Part shown: piece by piece, positions 1,892 through 57,791 of the stretch | Layout of the letters: each line of letters begins with the position of its first letter | How positions within the stretch are numbered: position 1 is the stretch's first letter | Source of the DNA: Macrostomum lignano | Taxonomy: Eukaryota | Direction of reading: 5' to 3' | Assembly (NCBI GenBank): GCA_002269645.1 | Contig: NIVC01002203.1 | Location: 1-64,000, forward strand | DNA: 64,000 nucleotides | Made by a program: the position numbers and the translations under genes | The notes under the pieces: model-generated | The model's database searches: none | What the model saw: the letters and a program-made list of their open reading frames with translations, nothing else | Told to the model about the DNA's origin: nothing

Positions 1892-2452
1892 TTCTTCTTC
1901 TTCAACCGTTTTGTCGCGGCGTACGTGCCCTGCGAGCCACTATTCTCCTCTGCACTTTTTCCTGTGACGCGCCATGTTCGTCAAGGCTAGCATCTTTCCA
2001 CAATCCGGACACGGTCCGGTCTTGCTCCTATACACGCGGGCTGTTACGTTCTGCTCCTCTGCTACCTGTTGTTCCTCGTGCTGTCTGCAGTTCCTCCTGT
2101 GTCTGGATAAGTTCGATTTAGAGACGGTTTTTCCACACGCATTGCAGGTGATTCGGCTTCCTTGCACCTCTTCCCCGCGGCATGCCTTCATGTCTTGAAG
2201 TCCCCGCCGCACTTCGGGCACGGCAGACTGGCTCTGGTCATCACGTGGTGCATGCGGCGCTGGTGCCCTTCCATGGTCTCCTTCCATCTTGTTCGATCAC
2301 GAACTAGCCGTTCAAGATCGAGTTCTTCAACCTTAGCATTTCTTAGCAGTTTCTTCCAGAACGAGATGATGGTCTGTCTTCGGTGCTTCGCTTTCCGAAC
2401 TCCTTCTGGGTCTTTACTCCATCCGAGAACGCACTGCTTCGCTAGGTTGTCA

Positions 2453-4351
2453 TCATGGTAGCCGTAGCACGTGCCCCATTCTCCTCCAGTGTGCCATCTC
2501 AATTTTTGTTGAGATGCTGGTGACTCTAAGATCGTCGCGGACATCCCCGCTGTTGGCACCTTTCTCTTTCATTTCTTTTAGAGGTGGCTTCGTCTTGCTG
2601 CTCCATACGTAACGATATAAGCGGTCCACCGTTTTCTGGAGCGTTTTAGTTTCTGACTTATGGAAAAGCCTGGCGCCGCAGTTGAAGAGCATGGTGCTCT
2701 CGACGCAGGCCTCAACGATCCTAGCTTGGGTTCTCTTAGTAAGTCTAGTCTTTCTGAGCATGTTCCGAACTCCGGCTAATGCTTTCGGGGCCCTCTGCAA
2801 TCTTTGTCCAATATCATTTTTGCGTCCTAGCCAGGTGCCGAGCATCCGTATGTTGTTATTGCTTTCAGTCCCCAGGACAGCGCTCTCTTCTTTGTCATCG
2901 TTAGTAATTTCCTCGAATTCTTTCATTACCTCGTTTATAATTTTTGTTCCTCGCTCAATTTCGTTCGTAGCTCCGATAATCGTTGTATCGTCGGCGAAGA
3001 AAGAGCACGACACGGTTTTCGTTGTCGTTTCCTCATTAAATTTATCCAATCGTTGCGGGGGGAGGCTATGCCCTGAACGACAAGTCCAGCGGATTCCAGC
3101 TATTTCGCCGTCGCTAATGGCCGCGGTTTTTCTCTCTTTCTCGGCAAGGCGTATTGCTGCTTGGTGATAGACGTTAAAGAGTATCGGGGAAGTGGCGCAT
3201 CCTTCTCTTAGACCACGCTGGGGTAGAAGGGTGTGCTCTCCTCGTTGTCCGATATGACTACGTCGTTTCCTCGTGCAGGTCTTTGATCTTGTCAATAATT
3301 CTCGTTGGCATTCCAGCAAGAAGTTGCCTAAAGGGTATGCTTTACGAAGGTCAAGCAGCTTGATACTGGAGTCCAGGTTGTCGGTATGGTCCGGGCTGTC
3401 GCGCAGTTTGCTGGCGTCCTCGTTGAGGCGCCAGATAATCTGAGTGGCGTCCATTGTAGACCGGCCACTGCGGAAGCCTGCCTTGTTCTCATCGAGTGCG
3501 CCAATGTTTTCTGCCCATGCGCTGATTCTTGTTGCTAGGATCCTTGCGATTATTCTGCTAACTAGCGGTAGCAAGCAGATGCCCCTGTAATTGTTCGCGT
3601 TGGCTTGGTCTCCTTTTTTGAAGAGCGGGATGATTTGACTGATTTTCTGATTCTCTCTCCAGTCTTTGGCTGGTGAGTTCCCCAGATGGTGGATTTCCTT
3701 TCTAAGCGATGTTTTCGCCTCCTCACAAGCTTCCTTGATGTACCTTATTCTTACTCCATCAATTCCTGGTGCTCCGTCTTGAATCTTCATCCATTCCCTC
3801 TCGATTTCTTCGTCTTCTAGCGGTGCGTCTAGCTTTTCGTTGGCGTCTCTAACCGTCATGCTGTCCGGTTCGTGAGCTCGTTCCGTTCTGAGTATGCTTT
3901 CTTTGATCAGTTCAGGGGGGTTCTCGTATCGTGAGGCTTGTAAAGTTTCTAGATGGTCTTTAAAATCTTCCGCCAAGAAGAGTGGTGATGCTTTGCTACC
4001 ATTTGCGTTTTGTTGTGTCGCTCTTCCCATCTTCCGCAGACAGTCGTACATCTCTGCGATGTTGCCACAATCACAGTGGTGTTTACATTTATCGGCAATG
4101 TTGACCCACCAAGCATCTTCCCATTCTTGCAGCTTCGTTTTCTTGATCTGTCTGCACACTCTAACGTGTTCGATTGCTGTCGCGATCCTTGTCGTGTTCT
4201 GGTCATCGTCAGGAGACAGGCGTGCACGATCTCTCGCTTGGTCCCGGGCGCTGAGGGCTCTAGCGAGGTTGATGTTGAGCTCCTTCAGTTCCTCCTCATG
4301 TCCAACCATCCAGCTGTTGGTTTGTCTGGTTCTCGGTCCGCATATTTCCAT
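2453..4351 (-). pseudogene. Reverse transcriptase portion of the element A ORF
   Basis: 632-aa ORF with non-LTR RT motifs. Local frameshift around 3300-3230 and frameshifts at both ends. Confidence 0.85.
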
Positions 4352-5661
4352 TGCGTTTTCAAGTAACTTTTTTCGGTCATTTCCCAGTTCATTGCCTCGT
4401 CCCTTTCTCGATTTGGTTCGGCTGTCTCTTCTGTATGTTCAGGTGTTGCTAGCCTCTCCTCTGTCTTCTTCCGAAAACTCTCTTTCACTTCTGGGTCACG
4501 GAGTCTAGTCCATTCGACCTGTTTGGTCTTTGGTCCTTTATGTTTTTGATTATTGTTGGTGTTCCTGGCATTGGGCTGCTTGATGGCGGTGCCTGGTAGC
4601 ACAGACAGCACTTTCGGCAAGTGGTCTGATAGCAAGGTTTCCGAGTGGTCTGTTGAGATTCGTCTCACCATTTTGTGACGGTCTTCCTTGCGCATGGCAA
4701 AGCCATCCAACTCGTACCAGGTGCCCGTGCGGGGGTGTTTCCAAGTTTCGGGTTTGTTCTGGTGATAGTAAGAGCTGACCCACACCATCCGTATGCTTTC
4801 CAACCAGGTTAGGAGGTCGGCGCCTTGTTGGTTGGTCAGGCCTTGGCGGAAACTCCCGGCGCTTCCATACTTGTGATGCAGTCTTTTTCCGACGTTAGAG
4901 TTTCAGTCACCTCCGATGATCATTGGTGAGTTTTGACCTATGGTGTTTAGCAAACGTTCAATTTCCGTACAAATGATTTCCATGTCTTCTTCGTAGGCTG
5001 GACTGTCTTTGATTGGTTGGTAGATCGTCATCACCACTGCTCCGCCAATTTCTATTGCAAGCGTTCTTTCTTGTGGGTGCATTTTTCTTCCTTGCGAGGT
5101 CCATAGGGTCCAGGCGGTGTTCCTTAGCAGAATGCCCACCTTCTGTGAGAATATTAGGTGGCAATCCTCGCCATCGCAGTGATAAGTTCTAATGCCTGTC
5201 GATTTAGTGTCGAGTTCAGTGAATAACGTTAAGTCCCATTTCCGTTAAGCCAGCTTGACCATCTCACCGAAATGCCCCGACATGATGTTAGCCCTTTGTG
5301 CGTTCTAGATGGCGATCTTGATTGACTCTTCTTTCCAACGTTTTTCGGCCAATTCCTGTGTGTGTGTTCTTCTTGCTGTTCTGCGTCTCTCCCTGCGCTT
5401 CTTCTTTCTGGCTTACCTGGCTCGGTTCTGTTGTCTTGTTCTTGGTCCAGGGTTCTTTTCGATCGTCTGGAGTCTGCTAGCGATCTCATTTGTCACTCTT
5501 CTTTCCTCTTCCCTCCTTCTTTCTGTCCTCGCGGGGTTTTTTTCACGTAGATCTTGTTTATAGAGGTGCCAGGGTCCGTTAATCCCTGGCCACTCTGTCG
5601 AGGGAAGGTTTGCCCACAGCTGTCAGAGGTTAGTCTGACTCTGTGGGCCTCTCCCCCCCCC

Positions 5662-5731
5662 GAATGCCTCTTTGCCAACCATTTGGGCTGTCCACTCGGC
5701 ACCTCGAGAAGGTGGAACATTCTTGCCGAAC
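5662..5731 (-). ncRNA. HDV-like self-cleaving ribozyme fold at the 5' end of element A
   Basis: Minus strand: P1 GUUCGGC/GCCGAGU (G1-U wobble); P3 ACC/GGU; L3 UUCUCGA; GG for P1.1; P4 CAGCC/GGUUG with flanking A and G; J4/2 CAAA with the catalytic-position C; P2 GAAUGUUCC/GAGGCAUUC (two G-U pairs, one C-A mismatch). Folded by eye. Confidence 0.8.
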
Positions 5732-5779
5732 CATCATCTTCATCATCATCATCATCATGATTATCATCATGATCATCAT

Positions 5780-6105
5780 CTTCTTCTTCTTCTTCTTCTG
5801 CCCTTTTCTCGCGTGGGACCCCGTTAGGTCGGATGGTTAGTGGTGAGCTCCACAACTTTTTCTGTGCCGTGCCAAGTTCGTTGCCGCTATCTCTCTTCTC
5901 TCTCTTCTATCTTTATCGCTCTCCTTACCTCACAATCGGTGTGTTTGGCCTTGTGTTTTTCGACGTCCGGGTCGGCTACTTCCGTCCGTCGTTTAGAAAA
6001 AGGGCCGGTGCGACAGTCCGGGGTTTCTCTCGTGGCTGTCGTCCGTGCGTCTTCTCCCTTGCAGACTCTTTGCCAGGAGTTGCCTCCCGTCCGCTGGCCT
6101 CCTCG
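5780..6105 (-). mobile_element. 3' fragment of a related non-LTR element (B) with (GAA)6 tail
   Basis: Degenerate terminal finger ...AATNLARHRKSCGAHH*, short 3' UTR with GCGAGAAAAGGG, then a GAA tail. Confidence 0.65.
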
Positions 6106-6112
6106 AGAATCT

Positions 6113-8657: not shown

Positions 8658-26936
<18,279 letters not shown>

Positions 26937-33100: not shown

Positions 33101-34055
33101 GAGGGCAAAGTGAGGTGGGGTATGTGGGAACGTTTATGCCTGACGAAACAGCACACCGTTAGGAGTAAAGTGTGCCAACTCACCTCGTTCGCAGACTTAA
33201 TCGGCATCGGATGCGAGATGAGGCTATCACCAGCCGCCAGTCCGCAGGTACCGCCGCTGCCGCCGCGCAACCAGCCTGCAGCTGTCGAACGTCGCAGTCG
33301 TTTGCCGCTGCCGCTCCCGTTGCCAAGGGAGACTCTGGATAGCCAGGCTGGAAGTGCAATAAAAATCAGATTAGAATTTGCAGAATGCTACTCTGAGTAG
33401 GAAAGCGATAAAAAAATTCGCTTATTGGTGCTCTGCCAAGGGGCCGTGTACAGCTGGCACAGGGAGGGGGTCACATGTCATCACGGCAGGTTGAATAGCT
33501 TAATTTTCCACTTGCTCATGGTGGCTGCCTCGAGGGGCTTTGAAAGCCACATTTGCATCTGTGTCTCTATCTGGAGTGCCTATGTACATATACATAAATA
33601 TATGACAGACTTGACAGCCTACCAGAGCTTCTACTGCCAGTCCCGTCCAAGCCGCGAAGGTCGTCAGCGACCATCGTCCCAGCAGCAGCCGCCGACGAGC
33701 GACGGGGCGACTTGCGCAGCTGCAAGTAGTAGCAGAAATAGCCAGCCAGAGTCACCGCGCACAGCAGCACCAGGAAGGACACGGCCACGCACACGGTCAC
33801 CACGATCAAGTCGCGAGCTCCACCGTCTCCAACAGGGCCGCCGCCGTCACCGTCGGGTGTCCCTGACAGCAGCGAGGTGCCACGCGGCCTGGTGTCGGTG
33901 AAGTTGATGAGAAGACGCGCCGACGAGCGTAGAGACGGCTGGCCCCTGTCGAGGGCCTCGACGCTCAAGGCACAGAGGCCGGACGAGTGCGGCGGCGGGC
34001 GCACCAGCAGCAGACGGCCGGTGTCCGACTCCAGGCTAAATTGGCCGGGAGGGCA

Positions 34056-34089
<34 letters not shown>

Positions 34090-36475
34090 GCTGCTGAGAC
34101 GATGCGAAACTCAATGCTGCCATTTTCGCCATCGTCGGGATCGACCGCGGACAGTCGAGCAACGCCGGCGCCGGGACGTTCGCGTGCGCTGACGTTCACG
34201 ACGGCCTCGAGAGCGTCAGCGGCGGCTGGCGGGAATACGAAGCTTGGCGCGTTGTCGTTGACATCTTCGACATCGATTTCAACGACTGTCTGGGCGGCCA
34301 TAGGGGGTCGGCCATGGTCGCGGGCCACCACTCGGAAGCGGTGGCGGCTGCGGCGCTCCCGGTCGAGTTCGCCGAGCAGCAGCAGCTCGCCGGCGCCGGT
34401 GACGCGAAAGGCGGCCGCTCCCGCCGACTCTTCCGAAGTCGTCGCCGGCAGCAGGGCGAAGGACAGACGGCCGTTCTCACCTGCGTCCGCGTCAGTAGCA
34501 ACGATCTGGCCGACAGCGAAGCCCGGCCGTGCGGCTTCGGATACGCTGAAGCGCCGGACACCGTCGGGCGCGCCCGGCTGCTGCGGGAACACCGGCACGC
34601 AGTCATTGACGTCGTCGACATCGATGCGAACAGTGGCGACCGCGGTGAGCTCCGGTTTGGCCGCGTCGGTGGCCAGCAGGTGGCAGCGGAGGCTGGCGTT
34701 CTGCTCCCGATCCAGCGGCGCCAAGGTGTACAGGCTGCCATTTCTCAGGCCGACGCCGATGAGGCTGTCGCAGGGCGGAGGCACCGAGTACAGCGTCTCG
34801 GCCGCCTCGTCCGGGTCGCGGGCCTCGGCTCGGCCGATCGAGGCGCCGGCGGCCAAATTCTCGGGCAGGCGGAAGGCGAACTCGGCGCCGGTTGGAAAGG
34901 CCGGCGGGCTGTCGTTTTGGTCGAGGACGCGGACGGTGAACCGGCGCTCGGCGCGGAGGCCGCCCGTGTCGGCACAGGAGATCCACAGGCGGTGCTCGGC
35001 GACCTCTTCGCGGTCGAGCGGCCGGCGACTGCGCAGTAGCAGGCGGAGAGTTTCACTGCTCGATGACGAGGCCTTGACGACAGCGGGCTCAGGCATCAGC
35101 TCGAACGAGTCGGTGCGATTAAGAAACCCGGCCAGGTCGCAGTCCGGCGGCGGCTGGTGGCGGCTGTCCCGGTCACGGTCGGTAACGAGAAGAAAGCCGA
35201 TGAGCTTTGGCGGGTGGTTCTCGGGCAGGGAGAGGCCCAGGCCGTTGGGTGAGGTGGATACGACTTCGATGCTGGGCGGGTTGTCGTTCACGTCTAACAC
35301 CTGCGGGTTGATGGGCTCTTTTCTGAGTGACAGCCTTTGTCAGAGTGACAGGCTACCGGAGTGACATGCTTTTAGAGTGACAGGCTTCCAGAGTGATAGG
35401 CTTCCAGAGTGATAGGCTTCCAGAGTAACAGGCTTTCAGAGTGACAGGTTTTCAGAGTGACAGGCTTCCAGAGTGACAGGCTTTCGGAATGTCCCGCTTT
35501 CAGAGTGACCGGCTTTCAGAGAGTGACAGGCTTTCAGAGCGATGTGCACTTACAACTGCCAACTGACCTTAACAGTGAGGCTCATAGACGCTGTTCTGGG
35601 CTTCGGGCTGTGGTTGTCGCTGACCAAAACCTCAAAGCGGTACTCCTGCCTGGCCTCGGCGTCCAGCAGCTGCTGCAGGTGGATCTCCCCGCTGACGGGA
35701 TCGATGCGGAACGGCAGCGGCTGTTGTGGCGACTCCGAGCTGCGCAGGCTGTAGCTGAGGTGCCCGGCGGATCTGTAGTCCCTGTCGATGGCGCGGGCGC
35801 GGTACAGCAGGGAGTGCAGCGAGGCGTTCTCCTTGACCTGTGCGGCGAAGGGGTCGGACTATGGCACTGCACTACTCTTCATCTAGTAGGCTGCGCGCGT
35901 TTTATCAGCTAAATTTGCTGAATTTAAATTTAACTTTTTCCTGCAATATGCGCATCAGCTACTCAGATTCATAGTCTATGGCCTACAGCACTTAGAGCTA
36001 GATGGAGCTTTTACCTGTAAGAAACTTGAGAACCATTGATATCCCTAGAAAATAAGGGGATCTTAAGTTACAGGTAAATTACTTAAGTAGAGACTAATTT
36101 AGAAAGCAGGTTCTTTTGCTGGCTCATCTCTTCTCTTCTAGAAGAAACTTGCTTTCCCAACCAAAAGCGTGGGCAGGGCAGAGAGGAGACAAAGACAGGC
36201 AGACAGGCAGGCAGAAGGCAGCCCCGGTCCCGACCATCGCATTGTCGTGCTGTGTCAGCTCGAATTTCCCCGAGCCAAGGGAGACACGACGGGAGGAGGC
36301 CGACTTCTCACGGGGGAGAGAATCGAGGGGATCTCATGCAGCCCGATCCCTGCCGGCTTTGAAAAGAAGAACTAGAAGATCCGGATTGGGAGGGGTTGAC
36401 GCTGACCTGAGTGAGGCCCGGCTGCTCTCTCTGCCTTAACCAGCGGACTGTGCTCTGTGATATATCTGTCTTGTG

Positions 36476-36646: not shown

Positions 36647-36695
<49 letters not shown>

Positions 36696-37549
36696 CTTAC
36701 CGGGATAATCTGAACCCGGGACGCGGGCTCGAACTCGGGATCAAAGTCGTTGGTGTTCTCCACGCTCACCAGGACCGTCAGGTTGCCGCCCGCCAACGGC
36801 GGCTCGCCCTCGTCGCTGGCCTGCACCAGCAGGGCAAAGCCTTCGCCCAGCATGGCGGCGGGGCCGTCGCCCTCCTCCTCGAGGTCGAGCTCGCGGACGG
36901 CGCGCAGGACGGGGACTCGAGAGCCGGAGTCCTCGCCAAGGCCGGCCGGATCGGTGAGGATCTCTTCGTCCAGGACAAACAGCGGCGAATGGCTCAGCAG
37001 GGCGTACCGGACGGTGCCGTTGCGTCCGGCGTCCGGGTCGACGGCGAGCGGCAGGCGCAGTCGCTCGGGGCTGTCGTGCTCGCGCAGTCGCCACCGCTGC
37101 ACCCGAGCCGACGCCGGGAATTCTGGCGCGTTATCGTTGACGTCCCCGACGCTGACGATGAGGTCGAGTAGACGGATGTCCGAGCCGGCGGGCCCGGCCG
37201 GCCTGAAAGTGGCCGTCAGCTCCAGCTGGCAGGGGCCGCGGCGCCGGCAGTGACGAATGGACTCGCGGTCGAGCCTCTCGGCGAGGGTCAGCTGGCCGCT
37301 GGCGGCGTCGAGGGCGAATCGACGGCGAGAGTCGACGCCGCCGCCGGAGAGCAGCTGGAATTGGGCCGGCAGCTCGTGCGGCTGCCTTGGCGTTGACCGA
37401 CGCGACACGAGCTTCTCGGCGAGGTCGCAGACGAGTGCACCGGCTGGGAGCTCCTCGCGCACGCTGCAGTGATGCCGCTCGGCGCCGGCTGGGTGGCGGC
37501 AGAGCCAACTGACGCAGAGGACAATGGCTAGAAAGAGGCGAGCGGGCAT
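30170..37549 (-). CDS. Protocadherin with 7 cadherin repeats (delta-protocadherin-like architecture), ~1158 aa
   Basis: Phase-compatible exons 37549-36701, 35837-35568, 35300-33623, 33347-33184, 32241-32172 and 30615-30170 (3477 nt = 1159 codons). Signal peptide MPARLFLAIVLCVSWLC; repeated PE, LDRE, DxD and DVNDNxP motifs; TM LIVVTVCVAVSFLVLLCAVTLAGYFCYYL; low-complexity cytoplasmic tail. Confidence 0.85.
30895..31660. repeat. CT-rich low-complexity tract with internal duplications
   Basis: Direct reading. Confidence 0.85.
31846..32104 (-). repeat. 18-bp minisatellite, 14 units, each containing GGTTCGATTCC on the minus strand
   Basis: Unit tcgaacccggatgtggaa; one variant at ~32027. Confidence 0.95.
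32595..33090. repeat. ~77-bp G-tract-rich minisatellite, ~6 units
   Basis: Unit ttggccacagactgtttagagtggagtggggtgggtgtggcaggggtaggggtataggaatgtagtgatgtacatgc. Confidence 0.9.
33623..35300 (-). CDS. Protocadherin exon 3 (EC4-EC7, TM)
   Basis: ORF 33567-35300; cccgcag|GTG ... TCTG|gtaggc. Confidence 0.92.
35325..36693. repeat. Intronic 16-bp cagagtgacaggcttt array (35325-35538) and (ATCA)n (36475-36693)
   Basis: Direct reading. Confidence 0.88.
35568..35837 (-). CDS. Protocadherin exon 2 (EC3: VKENASLHSLLYRARAIDRD...SLTVK)
   Basis: gcacag|GTC ... GTTAAG|gtcagt; phase 0/0; missed by the ORF track. Confidence 0.88.
36701..37549 (-). CDS. Protocadherin exon 1 (signal peptide, EC1-EC2)
   Basis: ORF 36686-37549; donor CCG|gtaagt. 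Confidence 0.92.
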
Positions 37550-47730: not shown

Positions 47731-48017
47731 CATGTCCTAGTGATTGCCTCCTTATCTTTAAATAAAACAAATATTGGCAGGAGGGCTGTCGGCACCTGGC
47801 ACAATGCGCTGACTGCAATTCTGCCCATTGCGCTGATTCCTGAGCACAACACACAAGCGCGCCAATACTGTACACAGACACACGCTCACACAGGGAGTAC
47901 AGCGGCCCTGGTTTTCTTATCGACAGGCAACTCCCTCCGGACCAATTTGTTTTTCTCCACACAAGAATCGAACCAGGGGTGCTAACCCGACCGCTAAAGC
48001 CCCGCCCGAGCGCTCAC

Positions 48018-48605
48018 CTGGAAATAGTCCTTGCTCTTGACCGGGTCCGGTTTCATAGTCTTGGCGCCGGGCTTCCAGTTGGCCGGGCAGACTTCGCCGT
48101 GCTTGTCGGTGAACTGGAAGGCCTGCACCAGACGGAAAGTCTCGTCAACGGACCGTCCAACAGGCAGGTCGTTGATTGTGATCTGCCTGAGCTGGCCCTT
48201 CTCGTTGATGATGAACAGGCCGCGGAAGGCGATGCCCTCGTCGCCTTTGAGCACACCGTAGGCGCGGCTAATCGCGTGAGACGGATCGGCGAGCAGCGGC
48301 ATGTTGAGCCGGCCGAGTCCGCCGTCCTTGCGAGCCGTGTTGGTCCAGGCCAGGTGGACAAAGTGAGTGTCGGTGCTGCAGGCCACCAGTTCGCAGTTGG
48401 CCTTGCGAAAGTCTTCGGCCCGATCGCTGAAGGCGATGATCTCGGTGGGGCAGACAAAGGTGAAGTCGGCCGGATAGAAGAACAGCACAACATATTTGCC
48501 GCGATAGTTGGCCAGGCTGATGTCGGCGAACGACTGGTCGGGCATGACGGCTTTGCCGGCAAAGTCGGGCGCCTGGCAGCCTGGCAACAGTTGCTGGGCG
48601 GACAT
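48018..48605 (-). CDS. Typical 2-Cys peroxiredoxin (Prx1/AhpC-TSA class)
   Basis: Peroxidatic [14 protein letters not shown], resolving [12 protein letters not shown] motif. Likely start MSAQQLLPG at 48605. Donor-like CAG|gtgagc at 48018, so the last few codons are either in an unlocated exon or read through to the stop at 47994. Confidence 0.92.
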
Positions 48606-48734
48606 CTGGTCGGGCTTGTTAGCTAGCTGGGATGGATGGGGCGGGTTGTACATCAGATTAGTATTGACGGACTTATTCATTCAAAGTTTACTGGATTGCC
48701 ACTTGGTAACTGCGGCGGCTGTTAAGTCTGGCAG

Positions 48735-56850: not shown

Positions 56851-57432
56851 TGTCTACTTCAGCATACAAATTCAAGGAAGGAATTTTTCTAAATAAATTT
56901 ATTACAGTTTTTACCTACCTGATTAGACACGGAAAACTGTTGAATACGGCTGCTCAGTCCTGTTGCAGCAATCGGGCTGTTTGTTAGCTGCATGTACTGC
57001 CAAGGCCTTGTAACAACCGTGCTCATTGACCTGGGCAGCTGTGTCAGACAGCGGGTCAGGCATAGGCCCGACCTCATAGCTCTGAACGAAGCCACTGAGA
57101 CAGACATGACGCTAAATTGTATATTGAGCTCAAAGCATGCAATGTTTAATTGAGAAATAGTTGCTATTAAACAACTTTTAAACATTGCATTAAACATAAG
57201 AGATAAATACTTCATAATTTAGAAATAAAGTACACAAAAAGGTTTATTGAAGGCCTAATAATTAGTCTAATTTTATTTATACCTATATTTTAAATTAATA
57301 CGAGAAATCAATTGATAAACGGTTACGTTAATAAACAAAGTGAATAATTATTAAAGCTATTTTAGGCTGTTTAAGGTAAATTATTTAACTTCAAGTTAAG
57401 TAGCCTTATTAAAATCTTAATTTTTATCAATA

Positions 57433-57791
57433 TGGCCCTCAAAAGGGCCGTTTTTACAAGACAGAAAAGAAACTTCCTACAACAAACAACTTAATCTCTT
57501 TAAGGATAATACCAGGTATATATACTAGATATCTAACTCAACTCAAGAGGTACAGGTACAGAGTAAATTTTACATTAAGAAAAGTAAAAACAATAATATA
57601 ATAATTATATAATTGGAGGTTTGACGCAACGCCTTCGCCGACATCGCCCCGCAACCTGCCCATTCCGTTATCGCCTAAGCATGCAAGCCCACTAATACTG
57701 TATTCAGGCACGCACTCATACACCCGCTCACATGAATAAGAATGGTAAAGATAACTTTTTTAATTACGGTGGCCCTCAAAAGGGCCGTTTT
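57433..57791 (-). promoter_or_regulatory. Two identical histone-3'-end-type stem-loops (GGCCCT-TTTG-AGGGCC)
   Basis: A 22-bp direct repeat at 57433-57454 and 57770-57791. On the minus strand it reads AAAAC GGCCCT TTTG AGGGCC A. No histone CDS seen upstream. Confidence 0.5.

Follow-up and report, generated by a model that had tools for sequence, protein, structure and literature searches.

The minus strand of the 64,000-nt stretch of Macrostomum lignano DNA analysed here (the window) encodes, with a probability that we put at roughly 80%, a genuine HDV-like self-cleaving ribozyme. It runs from position 5731 to position 5662 and makes up the first 70 nt of a full-length AP-endonuclease-type LINE (element A), which it would release from longer transcripts by the mechanism proposed below. 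The kind of device is already familiar, and the element family is new.

A nested double pseudoknot at the start of element A

Read on the minus strand, the upstream sequence ...GATGATGATGAAGATGATG is followed by G5731-TTCGGC AA GAATGTTCC ACC TTCTCGA GGT GCCGAGT GG A CAGCC-CAAAT-GGTTG G CAAA GAGGCATTC, which ends at 5662. The initial annotation had placed all the parts of an HDV fold in these 70 nt, namely a 7-bp P1 with a G1-U wobble, a 3-bp P3 with a UUCUCGA loop, GG for P1.1, a P4 hairpin flanked by A and G, a CAAA J4/2 and a P2 with one mismatch. Every one of them was recovered where it had been proposed:

5662-5731, minus strand: candidate HDV-like ribozyme, 70 nt, predicted cleavage 5' of G5731; evidence from a descriptor, three Rfam models and covariation in relatives
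5725-5731, minus strand: P1 5' strand GTTCGGC, pairing with GCCGAGT at 5694-5700, 7 bp
A5724 and A5723, minus strand: J1/2, read from the sequence
5714-5722, minus strand: P2 5' strand GAATGTTCC, pairing with 5662-5670 (GAGGCATTC) over 9 positions, with a single C5715.A5669 mismatch
5701-5713, minus strand: P3, ACC 5713-5711 with GGT 5703-5701, 3 bp, closing a 7-nt L3
5710-5704, minus strand: L3 TTCTCGA, of which T5709 and C5708 form P1.1
5692-5693, minus strand: GG of P1.1, G5693 and G5692 pairing with C5708 and T5709; invariant in 11 of 11 aligned ribozymes
A5691 and G5675, minus strand: unpaired bases flanking P4
5676-5690, minus strand: P4 hairpin CAGCC-CAAAT-GGTTG, 5 bp with a CAAAT loop; relatives have another sequence and length here
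5671-5674, minus strand: J4/2 CAAA, with C5674 as the predicted catalytic cytosine; CAAA invariant in 11 of 11 aligned ribozymes

The structural hallmarks of the HDV-like class are all present. P1, P1.1, P2, P3 and P4 follow each other in canonical order as a nested double pseudoknot, as captured by the strict descriptor described below. The +1 G opens a P1 of about 7 bp with a G.U wobble (G5731.T5694), which is followed by a T.G wobble. The 3-bp P3 closes an L3 of about 7 nt, whose pyrimidines make the 2-bp P1.1 with the GG that follows P1, and J4/2 starts with a cytosine (C-N-R-A), here C5674 and then AAA. The relatives suggest an alternative reading in which P2 has 7 bp (5722-5716 paired with 5668-5662) and J4/2 is CAAAGA.

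In terms of folding energy, a plain MFE fold of the ribozyme region (z = -1.5) is not significant and gives no information, since the method ignores pseudoknots and the fold is disturbed by a competing G-run downstream. This G-run, at 5655-5661 on the minus strand, directly follows the ribozyme and is able to pair with the P3/L3 region in the MFE fold. By analogy with a proposal made for L1Tc, it could give rise to an alternative post-cleavage conformation.

Descriptor and Rfam searches

A loose descriptor gave 2075 matches and was useless, and a strict version was used instead. It demanded a P1 starting with G and paired at 7 of 7 positions, a P3 paired at 3 of 3, a 7-nt L3, a 2-bp P1.1, a P4 with 4 or more base pairs, a C-N-R-A J4/2, and a P2 of 6 bp or more in which one mismatch was tolerated. 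Its L3 motif (a pyrimidine-rich/CG pattern) was taken from the Rfam consensus lines and not from the candidate. On both strands of the 64-kb window, the strict descriptor matched a single site, 5731-5662. In 200 dinucleotide-preserving shuffles, a mean of 0.005 sites was found, with a match in one of the 200. A descriptor search of this kind had been put forward as a check in the initial annotation, and the proposed site came through it as the only one in the window. Applied to the relatives introduced below, the strict descriptor and a "relaxed" one found nothing meaningful, because those sequences have long L3 loops, a 6-bp P1 or branched P4 domains.

As for the Infernal HDV models, also suggested at the outset, the outcome is divided: three models align at the expected coordinates, all of them below threshold. 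In a sensitive scan of 5560-5830, the best local match was RF02682 (HDV-F-prausnitzii), with 28.1 bits against a gathering threshold of 44 (E = 0.0016), followed by RF00094 (HDV_ribozyme; 23.2 bits, threshold 50) and RF01787 (drz-agam-1; 18.2 bits, threshold 37). All three HDV-type models align end to end, at 5662/3-5731/3. At the curated gathering thresholds Rfam reports no ribozyme, and in a sensitive scan of the whole window the candidate is the sole ribozyme-type match, with E = 0.37. Since it scores below the gathering thresholds, the candidate belongs to the structural class only and to no curated Rfam family (RF00094, RF02682 or RF01787). Among the relatives, the homologous place in L004 scored 25.9 bits with HDV-F-prausnitzii, part of the ribozyme of L010 scored 19.7 bits with drz-agam-1, and the HDV-type models gave no match in L001, L011 and L012.

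A covariance model (R1), trained on the five most distant relatives, gave no match in the window with default filters. With filters off, the window site scored 6.6 bits and ranked seventh, not separated from the background. We read this result as uninformative rather than contrary, since a long, family-specific P4 and the sequence of P2 dominate the model.

A match to the HDV motif that arose by chance, in DNA rich in GC and in repeats, would agree with the low Rfam scores, with the whole-window E-value and with the many matches of loose descriptors. It is at odds with the strict-descriptor expectation, and with the fold of ten relatives, described next, which occupies the homologous position and shows compensatory changes.

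Conservation and covariation in related elements

Homologues of the RT region show 36-49% protein identity, and most of them come from Tara Oceans and other ENA assemblies. Twelve loci encoding such homologues were taken, and all that reach the 5' region carry an NPGP motif. A metagenome scan with an endonuclease alignment yielded just 4 loci, all very distant (22-29% identity), and these were set aside. The relatives' ribozymes were located by means of the 2A motif as an anchor and by eye. The same double pseudoknot can be folded 275-317 nt upstream of NPGP in L001, L003, L004, L005 and L010 to L016. The one closest to that of the window is in L014, with a common and nearly identical ACC-TTCTCG P3/L3; its helices are P1 GCTCGGT/ACCGAGC, P2 TGACTTC/GAAGTCA and P4 CAGGG/CCCTG.

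MAFFT misaligns the 3' halves of whole ribozymes, where P4 is variable. The rows were therefore segmented by hand and N-padded, with P4 cut out, and L004 was left out of the second alignment set. With 8 sequences, 99.3% of the cells pair, compared to 66.5% when shuffled and at most 48% with slid partners. With 10 sequences, the values are 98.9%, 67.5% and at most 49%. Compensatory changes are seen at 17 of 22 pairs in either alignment; by helix, the ten sequences give 6 of 7 in P1, 8 of 9 in P2 and 3 of 3 scorable pairs in P3. In this larger alignment both P2 and P1.1 pair in 100% of the cells. Covariation across other full-length copies had been named beforehand as something to look for, and is thus present in ten relatives from other assemblies. 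The initial annotation had also stated that absence of conserved pairings would count against the ribozyme; the fold is kept in the relatives, with GG and CAAA invariant.

As the rows had been fitted by hand, a control kept each sequence from P3 onward and randomised the 5' segment at the same composition. A perfect P1 and a perfect P2 of at least 6 bp were then required, with equal spacing freedom. Random segments passed in 13-400 of 200,000 trials per sequence, and 8 of the 11 real sequences passed. At 1e-4 to 2e-3 per sequence, the pass rate of random segments is too low for hand-fitting to account for the pairing. The control weighs equally against a chance match, an explanation that is effectively refuted by the conservation data and that we consider hardly credible.

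Several relatives depart from the canonical form in having G-C, A.C or C-G as the first pair, a 6-bp P1, a long L3, or a J4/2 of 5-6 nt. Relatives with a 7-bp P1 open it with G.U or G-C, and three sequences are exceptions.

The lack of a canonical G.U pair in several relatives would suit a different explanation, in which the conserved structure is an HDV-shaped 5' UTR that never cleaved, or no longer does, and that is bound by the element's protein or promotes translation in the manner of an IRES. The R2 protein binds a 5' pseudoknot RNA, HDV-like ribozymes have been reported to promote translation (PMC6765202), and the ATG-less leader frames of these elements start at or in the ribozyme. However, the positions that matter for catalysis only, the C of the J4/2 CAAA and the GG of P1.1, are invariant, and a non-cleaving structure leaves unexplained why the 5' boundary of the DNA equals the cleavage site in independent insertions (see below). 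We regard this explanation as quite improbable, and a structure that cleaves itself as the better reading of the conserved fold.

Element A and its leader

Element A is a full-length, single-ORF non-LTR retrotransposon with AP-endonuclease, reverse transcriptase and zinc-finger regions. Downstream of the ribozyme, its parts are:

5443-5622, minus strand: leader frame without ATG, ending in the 2A-like motif ..IASRLQTIEKNPGP; NPGP at 5454-5443, 277 nt from the ribozyme start
1940-5484, minus strand: decayed coding region with AP-endonuclease, RT and C-terminal C2H2-type zinc fingers, from Pfam and tblastn; stops and frameshifts
1939-1904, minus strand: 3' UTR, 36 nt
1903-1699, minus strand: (GAA)n(GAT)n tail

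The Pfam domains RVT_1, Exo_endo_phos and zf-C2H2 were found both in the window copy and in intact relatives, which have the architecture AP endonuclease, reverse transcriptase, zinc fingers. The nearest solved structures to the relatives' protein are LINE-1 ORF2p and R2. From 5484 down to 1952, tblastn covers residues ~79-1317 of a 1326-aa relative (intact relatives have 1265-1326 aa). The reading frame of element A has a stop 13 codons past NPGP and further stops, with the final stop at 1940. Because of these stops the copy is dead, so that a present-day function is doubtful; judged by its sequence, it is a dead relic with an intact-looking ribozyme.

The open stretch of the leader frame starts inside the ribozyme or immediately behind it, and the frame has no ATG in the window copy, L003, L004 and L012. 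It carries a conserved peptide motif, ..TEG/W..L[LYF]K[QE]..GEGP, and in the window it ends in ..LQTIEKNPGP. The NPGP motif and its 275-317 nt spacing from the ribozyme are the same in the 12 related loci. A TATAAA-like motif ~180 nt downstream of the ribozyme was considered as an internal promoter, and is better explained as codons of the conserved leader motif L-[LYF]-K-[QE]. The clade of the element is not fixed by the 2A leader, because leaders of this type are known from the CR1, L2, Rex1 and Crack clades as well (PMC3708506).

The 5' boundary coincides with the predicted cleavage site

In the window, the junction reads ..GATGATG|GTTCGGC at G5731. There is one copy of the exact family in the window, and G5732 can be assigned either to (GAT)n or to the element, so that this single-copy junction is fixed within 1 nt. 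A related family provides four independent insertions on different contigs, in all of which the first common base is the very G that opens P1:

L001: ..GATGATAC|GCTTGGC
L013: ..GATGATG|GCTTGGC
L016: ..GATGGT|GCTTGGC
L015: ..GATGATG|GCTTGGC, a subfamily whose P2 is compensatory and whose P4 differs

The upstream bases differ among these four insertions, and the upstream DNA is always a trinucleotide microsatellite. The initial annotation had described the cleavage site as coinciding to the nucleotide with a microsatellite/TSD junction. The coincidence with the junction holds, within 1 nt in the window; the mention of a target-site duplication is unverifiable, since none can be recognised inside a microsatellite.

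Directly upstream of the ribozyme, a composite (GAA)6(GAT)n microsatellite (5732-5798, minus strand) forms the 3' tail of a preceding short element. The same type of composite tail ends element A, a second element in the window (element B; tail 6192-6127), L013 (6380-6457) and L014 (1904-1996), and in front of the tails lies a short 3' UTR end that is conserved, ..GCCGCGACAAAACGG.. or ..CACGCGAGAAAAGGG... Newer copies are located within older tails or at their ends, which results in head-to-tail stacks. That of the window, all on the minus strand, is composed of:

8320-8218, minus strand: tail
8199-7843, minus strand: fragment with the zinc-finger region only
7776-6217, minus strand: 5'-truncated element B, with its tail at 6192-6127
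6110-5799, minus strand: ORF-less element of ~330 nt, with its tail at 5798-5732
5731 to 1699, minus strand: full-length element A

L014 has a stack of the same make-up, with an element end, a tail, a short ORF-less element, a microsatellite and a full-length element.

The short element of the window is headed by a second ribozyme remnant (6061-6110, minus strand), which is 5'-truncated. The remnant keeps L3 ATTCTCGA, the P1 3' strand GGCCAGC, GG, P4 CGGGAG/CTCCTG, CAAA and the P2 3' strand GTCTGC, and is without the 5' strands of P1, P2 and P3. From here the element runs on into leader-like sequence and then into an end that resembles the LINE 3' UTR, followed by its own (GAA)6(GAT)n tail; tblastn with the relatives found no protein homology in 6110-5799. 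The analogous short element in L014 (2012-2400) has a complete ribozyme with a very large P4. Both are probably non-autonomous derivatives that arose by internal deletion, much like the SIDEs of R2 (PMC3414825).

An exact 5' end would also be obtained if an internal promoter at +1 were what mainly sets it at G5731, with the ribozyme as a back-up function, as in Pr77/L1TcRz: promoter and ribozyme predict the same boundary. The first 77 nt of L1Tc are both promoter and ribozyme (PMC3383444), and element A has the L1Tc layout of ribozyme, 2A, endonuclease, RT and C2H2 fingers. On the other hand, the covariation reflects selection on RNA pairing and not on DNA, with P1 and P2 sequences that are almost wholly different between families, and stacking in tails fits a dependence on read-through. 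Both ideas could hold at once, and a boundary set mainly by a promoter is, in our judgement, unlikely.

Proposed mechanism of release and expression

We favour release by ribozyme cleavage, the reading established for ribozyme-terminated LINEs (PMC3774820, PMC6765202). Target-primed reverse transcription would place the elements in microsatellites of the (GAT)n type, in very many cases in the (GAA)n(GAT)n tail of an earlier copy. Insertion into their own tails would therefore pile them up head to tail and leave them with no dependable upstream promoter. Transcription reading in from upstream, from a neighbouring element or a host unit, would produce a co-transcript, in which the ribozyme would fold co-transcriptionally and cut 5' of G5731, with C5674 in J4/2 as the predicted general acid/base beside the G.U pair of the cleavage site. 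The product would be an RNA of unit length that carries a 5'-OH and has the ribozyme at its start. With this processed RNA as the template, full-length DNA copies would begin exactly at G+1. That the element is excised from a co-transcript, in keeping with its stacked surroundings, was already part of the initial annotation; the head-to-tail stacking is there, in the window and in L014, and cleavage and read-through are proposed.

The ribozyme retained on the RNA probably aids cap-independent translation of the leader, AUG-less in several families, as has been reported for R2, RTE and L1Tc, after which the 2A-like NPGP would separate the leader peptide from the endonuclease/RT protein. More speculatively, ribozyme, AUG-less leader and 2A might constitute one ancient cap-independent expression cassette, common to trypanosome L1Tc and to widespread LINEs of metazoa and marine eukaryotes. 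Self-insertion might then build "polycistronic" arrays, in which one upstream promoter feeds many units, among them short ORF-less derivatives reduced to ribozyme, leader and 3' hairpin, and every unit is set free by the ribozyme that it carries. We consider this wider picture possible, and advance it tentatively.

Other features of the window

Outside the LINE stack, an intron-less peroxiredoxin ORF (47994-48680, minus strand) matches a protein of Macrostomum lignano with 100% identity across 90% of its length, which makes this flatworm almost certainly the host. Two matches to the histone 3' UTR stem-loop, at 57410-57454 and 57749-57791 (minus strand), score 33.8 and 32.3 bits against an Rfam gathering threshold of 34, which suggests replication-dependent histone genes near 57410-57791.

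Cadherin/protocadherin-like ORFs and an ORF resembling a C2 domain are found at 33567-35300 (minus strand), 36686-37549 (minus strand) and 21803-22558 (plus strand), as judged by eye from the translations. These are host genes lying among many minisatellites (for example at 628-1015, 8833-9515, 9936-10377 and 11340-11790). Lastly, Rfam gives a marginal tRNA match at 19230-19303 (minus strand; 30.8 bits, threshold 29). The match is doubtful, since ARAGORN calls no tRNA at 19230-19303, and it may represent a tRNA-derived repeat or pseudogene.

Significance

The candidate and its relatives form a new conserved HDV-like family, with predicted catalysis, that lies below the current Rfam thresholds and is present in a flatworm model organism and in marine-plankton assemblies. 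The ribozyme-plus-2A 5' architecture, earlier described for trypanosome L1Tc, is present in animal LINEs too. The main survey of 2A-bearing LINEs makes no mention of ribozymes (PMC3708506), and our literature search found no work connecting Macrostomum lignano with ribozymes.

In practical terms, the ribozyme is a nucleotide-exact annotation marker for full-length 5' ends where microsatellite stacking obscures the boundaries of elements. The family could also serve as a compact system for cap-independent, non-AUG translation coupled to 2A skipping, and there is value as well in its stacked, self-targeting architecture with short derivatives.

Comparison with known systems

HDV-like ribozymes are known at the 5' ends of R2, R4/Dong, RTE, Baggins and L1Tc, where they release the elements from co-transcripts (PMC3774820, PMC6765202, PMC3383444). 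The initial annotation had cited R2 and RTE as precedents of this kind, and these sources document them. Ribozyme-terminated LINEs have the ribozyme at their extreme 5' end, with the cleavage site at the junction, and encode RT and an endonuclease. Here, the predicted cleavage site and the junction coincide within 1 nt in the window and exactly in the four insertions of the related family, and the coding region contains RVT_1 and Exo_endo_phos.

The closest layout is that of L1Tc (ingi clade, Trypanosoma cruzi), with the L1TcRz/Pr77 ribozyme in the first ~70-77 nt (PMC3383444, PMC3185411, PMC3708506). Like L1Tc, these elements have an in-frame 2A-like NPGP, an AP endonuclease, an RT and C-terminal C2H2 fingers in a single ORF, and often occur in tandem. 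Having a 2A-like peptide at the N terminus and C2H2 fingers at the C terminus of one ORF is a feature of the ingi/L1Tc clade. Another such feature, the RNase H present in L1Tc, is missing from what was detected here, with no RNase H domain after the RT at E <= 0.1 in four intact relatives. Furthermore, the hosts are a flatworm and marine eukaryotes and not a kinetoplastid, the tail is (GAA)n(GAT)n instead of poly(A), and there is no sequence similarity to Pr77. L1Tc has promoter activity in the same 77 nt; the likeness here is one of layout.

Dong is specific for a trinucleotide microsatellite. In R4/Dong and RTE/Baggins (drz-Agam, drz-Ppac), cleavage is reported at the exact 5' end of the element (PMC3774820), as predicted here, and the ribozymes of RTE are reported to support cap-free translation initiation (PMC6765202, citing Ruminski 2011). 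In contrast to these elements, the family described here has a 2A leader, C-terminal zinc fingers and another ribozyme sequence (drz-agam-1 at 18.2 bits, threshold 37).

In R2, too, a 5' HDV-like ribozyme releases a promoter-less element from a co-transcript (PMC3774820), and the ribozyme is retained in its SIDEs, short derivatives with internal deletions (PMC3774820, PMC3414825), to which 6110-5799 of the window and 2012-2400 of L014 may be compared. R2 has a restriction-like endonuclease and an rDNA target (28S), whereas here the endonuclease is of the AP type and the target is a microsatellite. R2 RNA of many lineages is cut upstream of the junction, and here the cut is predicted at the junction.

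Finally, twister-variant ribozymes have been reported in non-LTR elements of Schistosoma mansoni (PMC8501958). Their ribozyme is a twister and the one described here is HDV-like; common to both is a flatworm LINE that is processed, here as proposed, by a small self-cleaving ribozyme.
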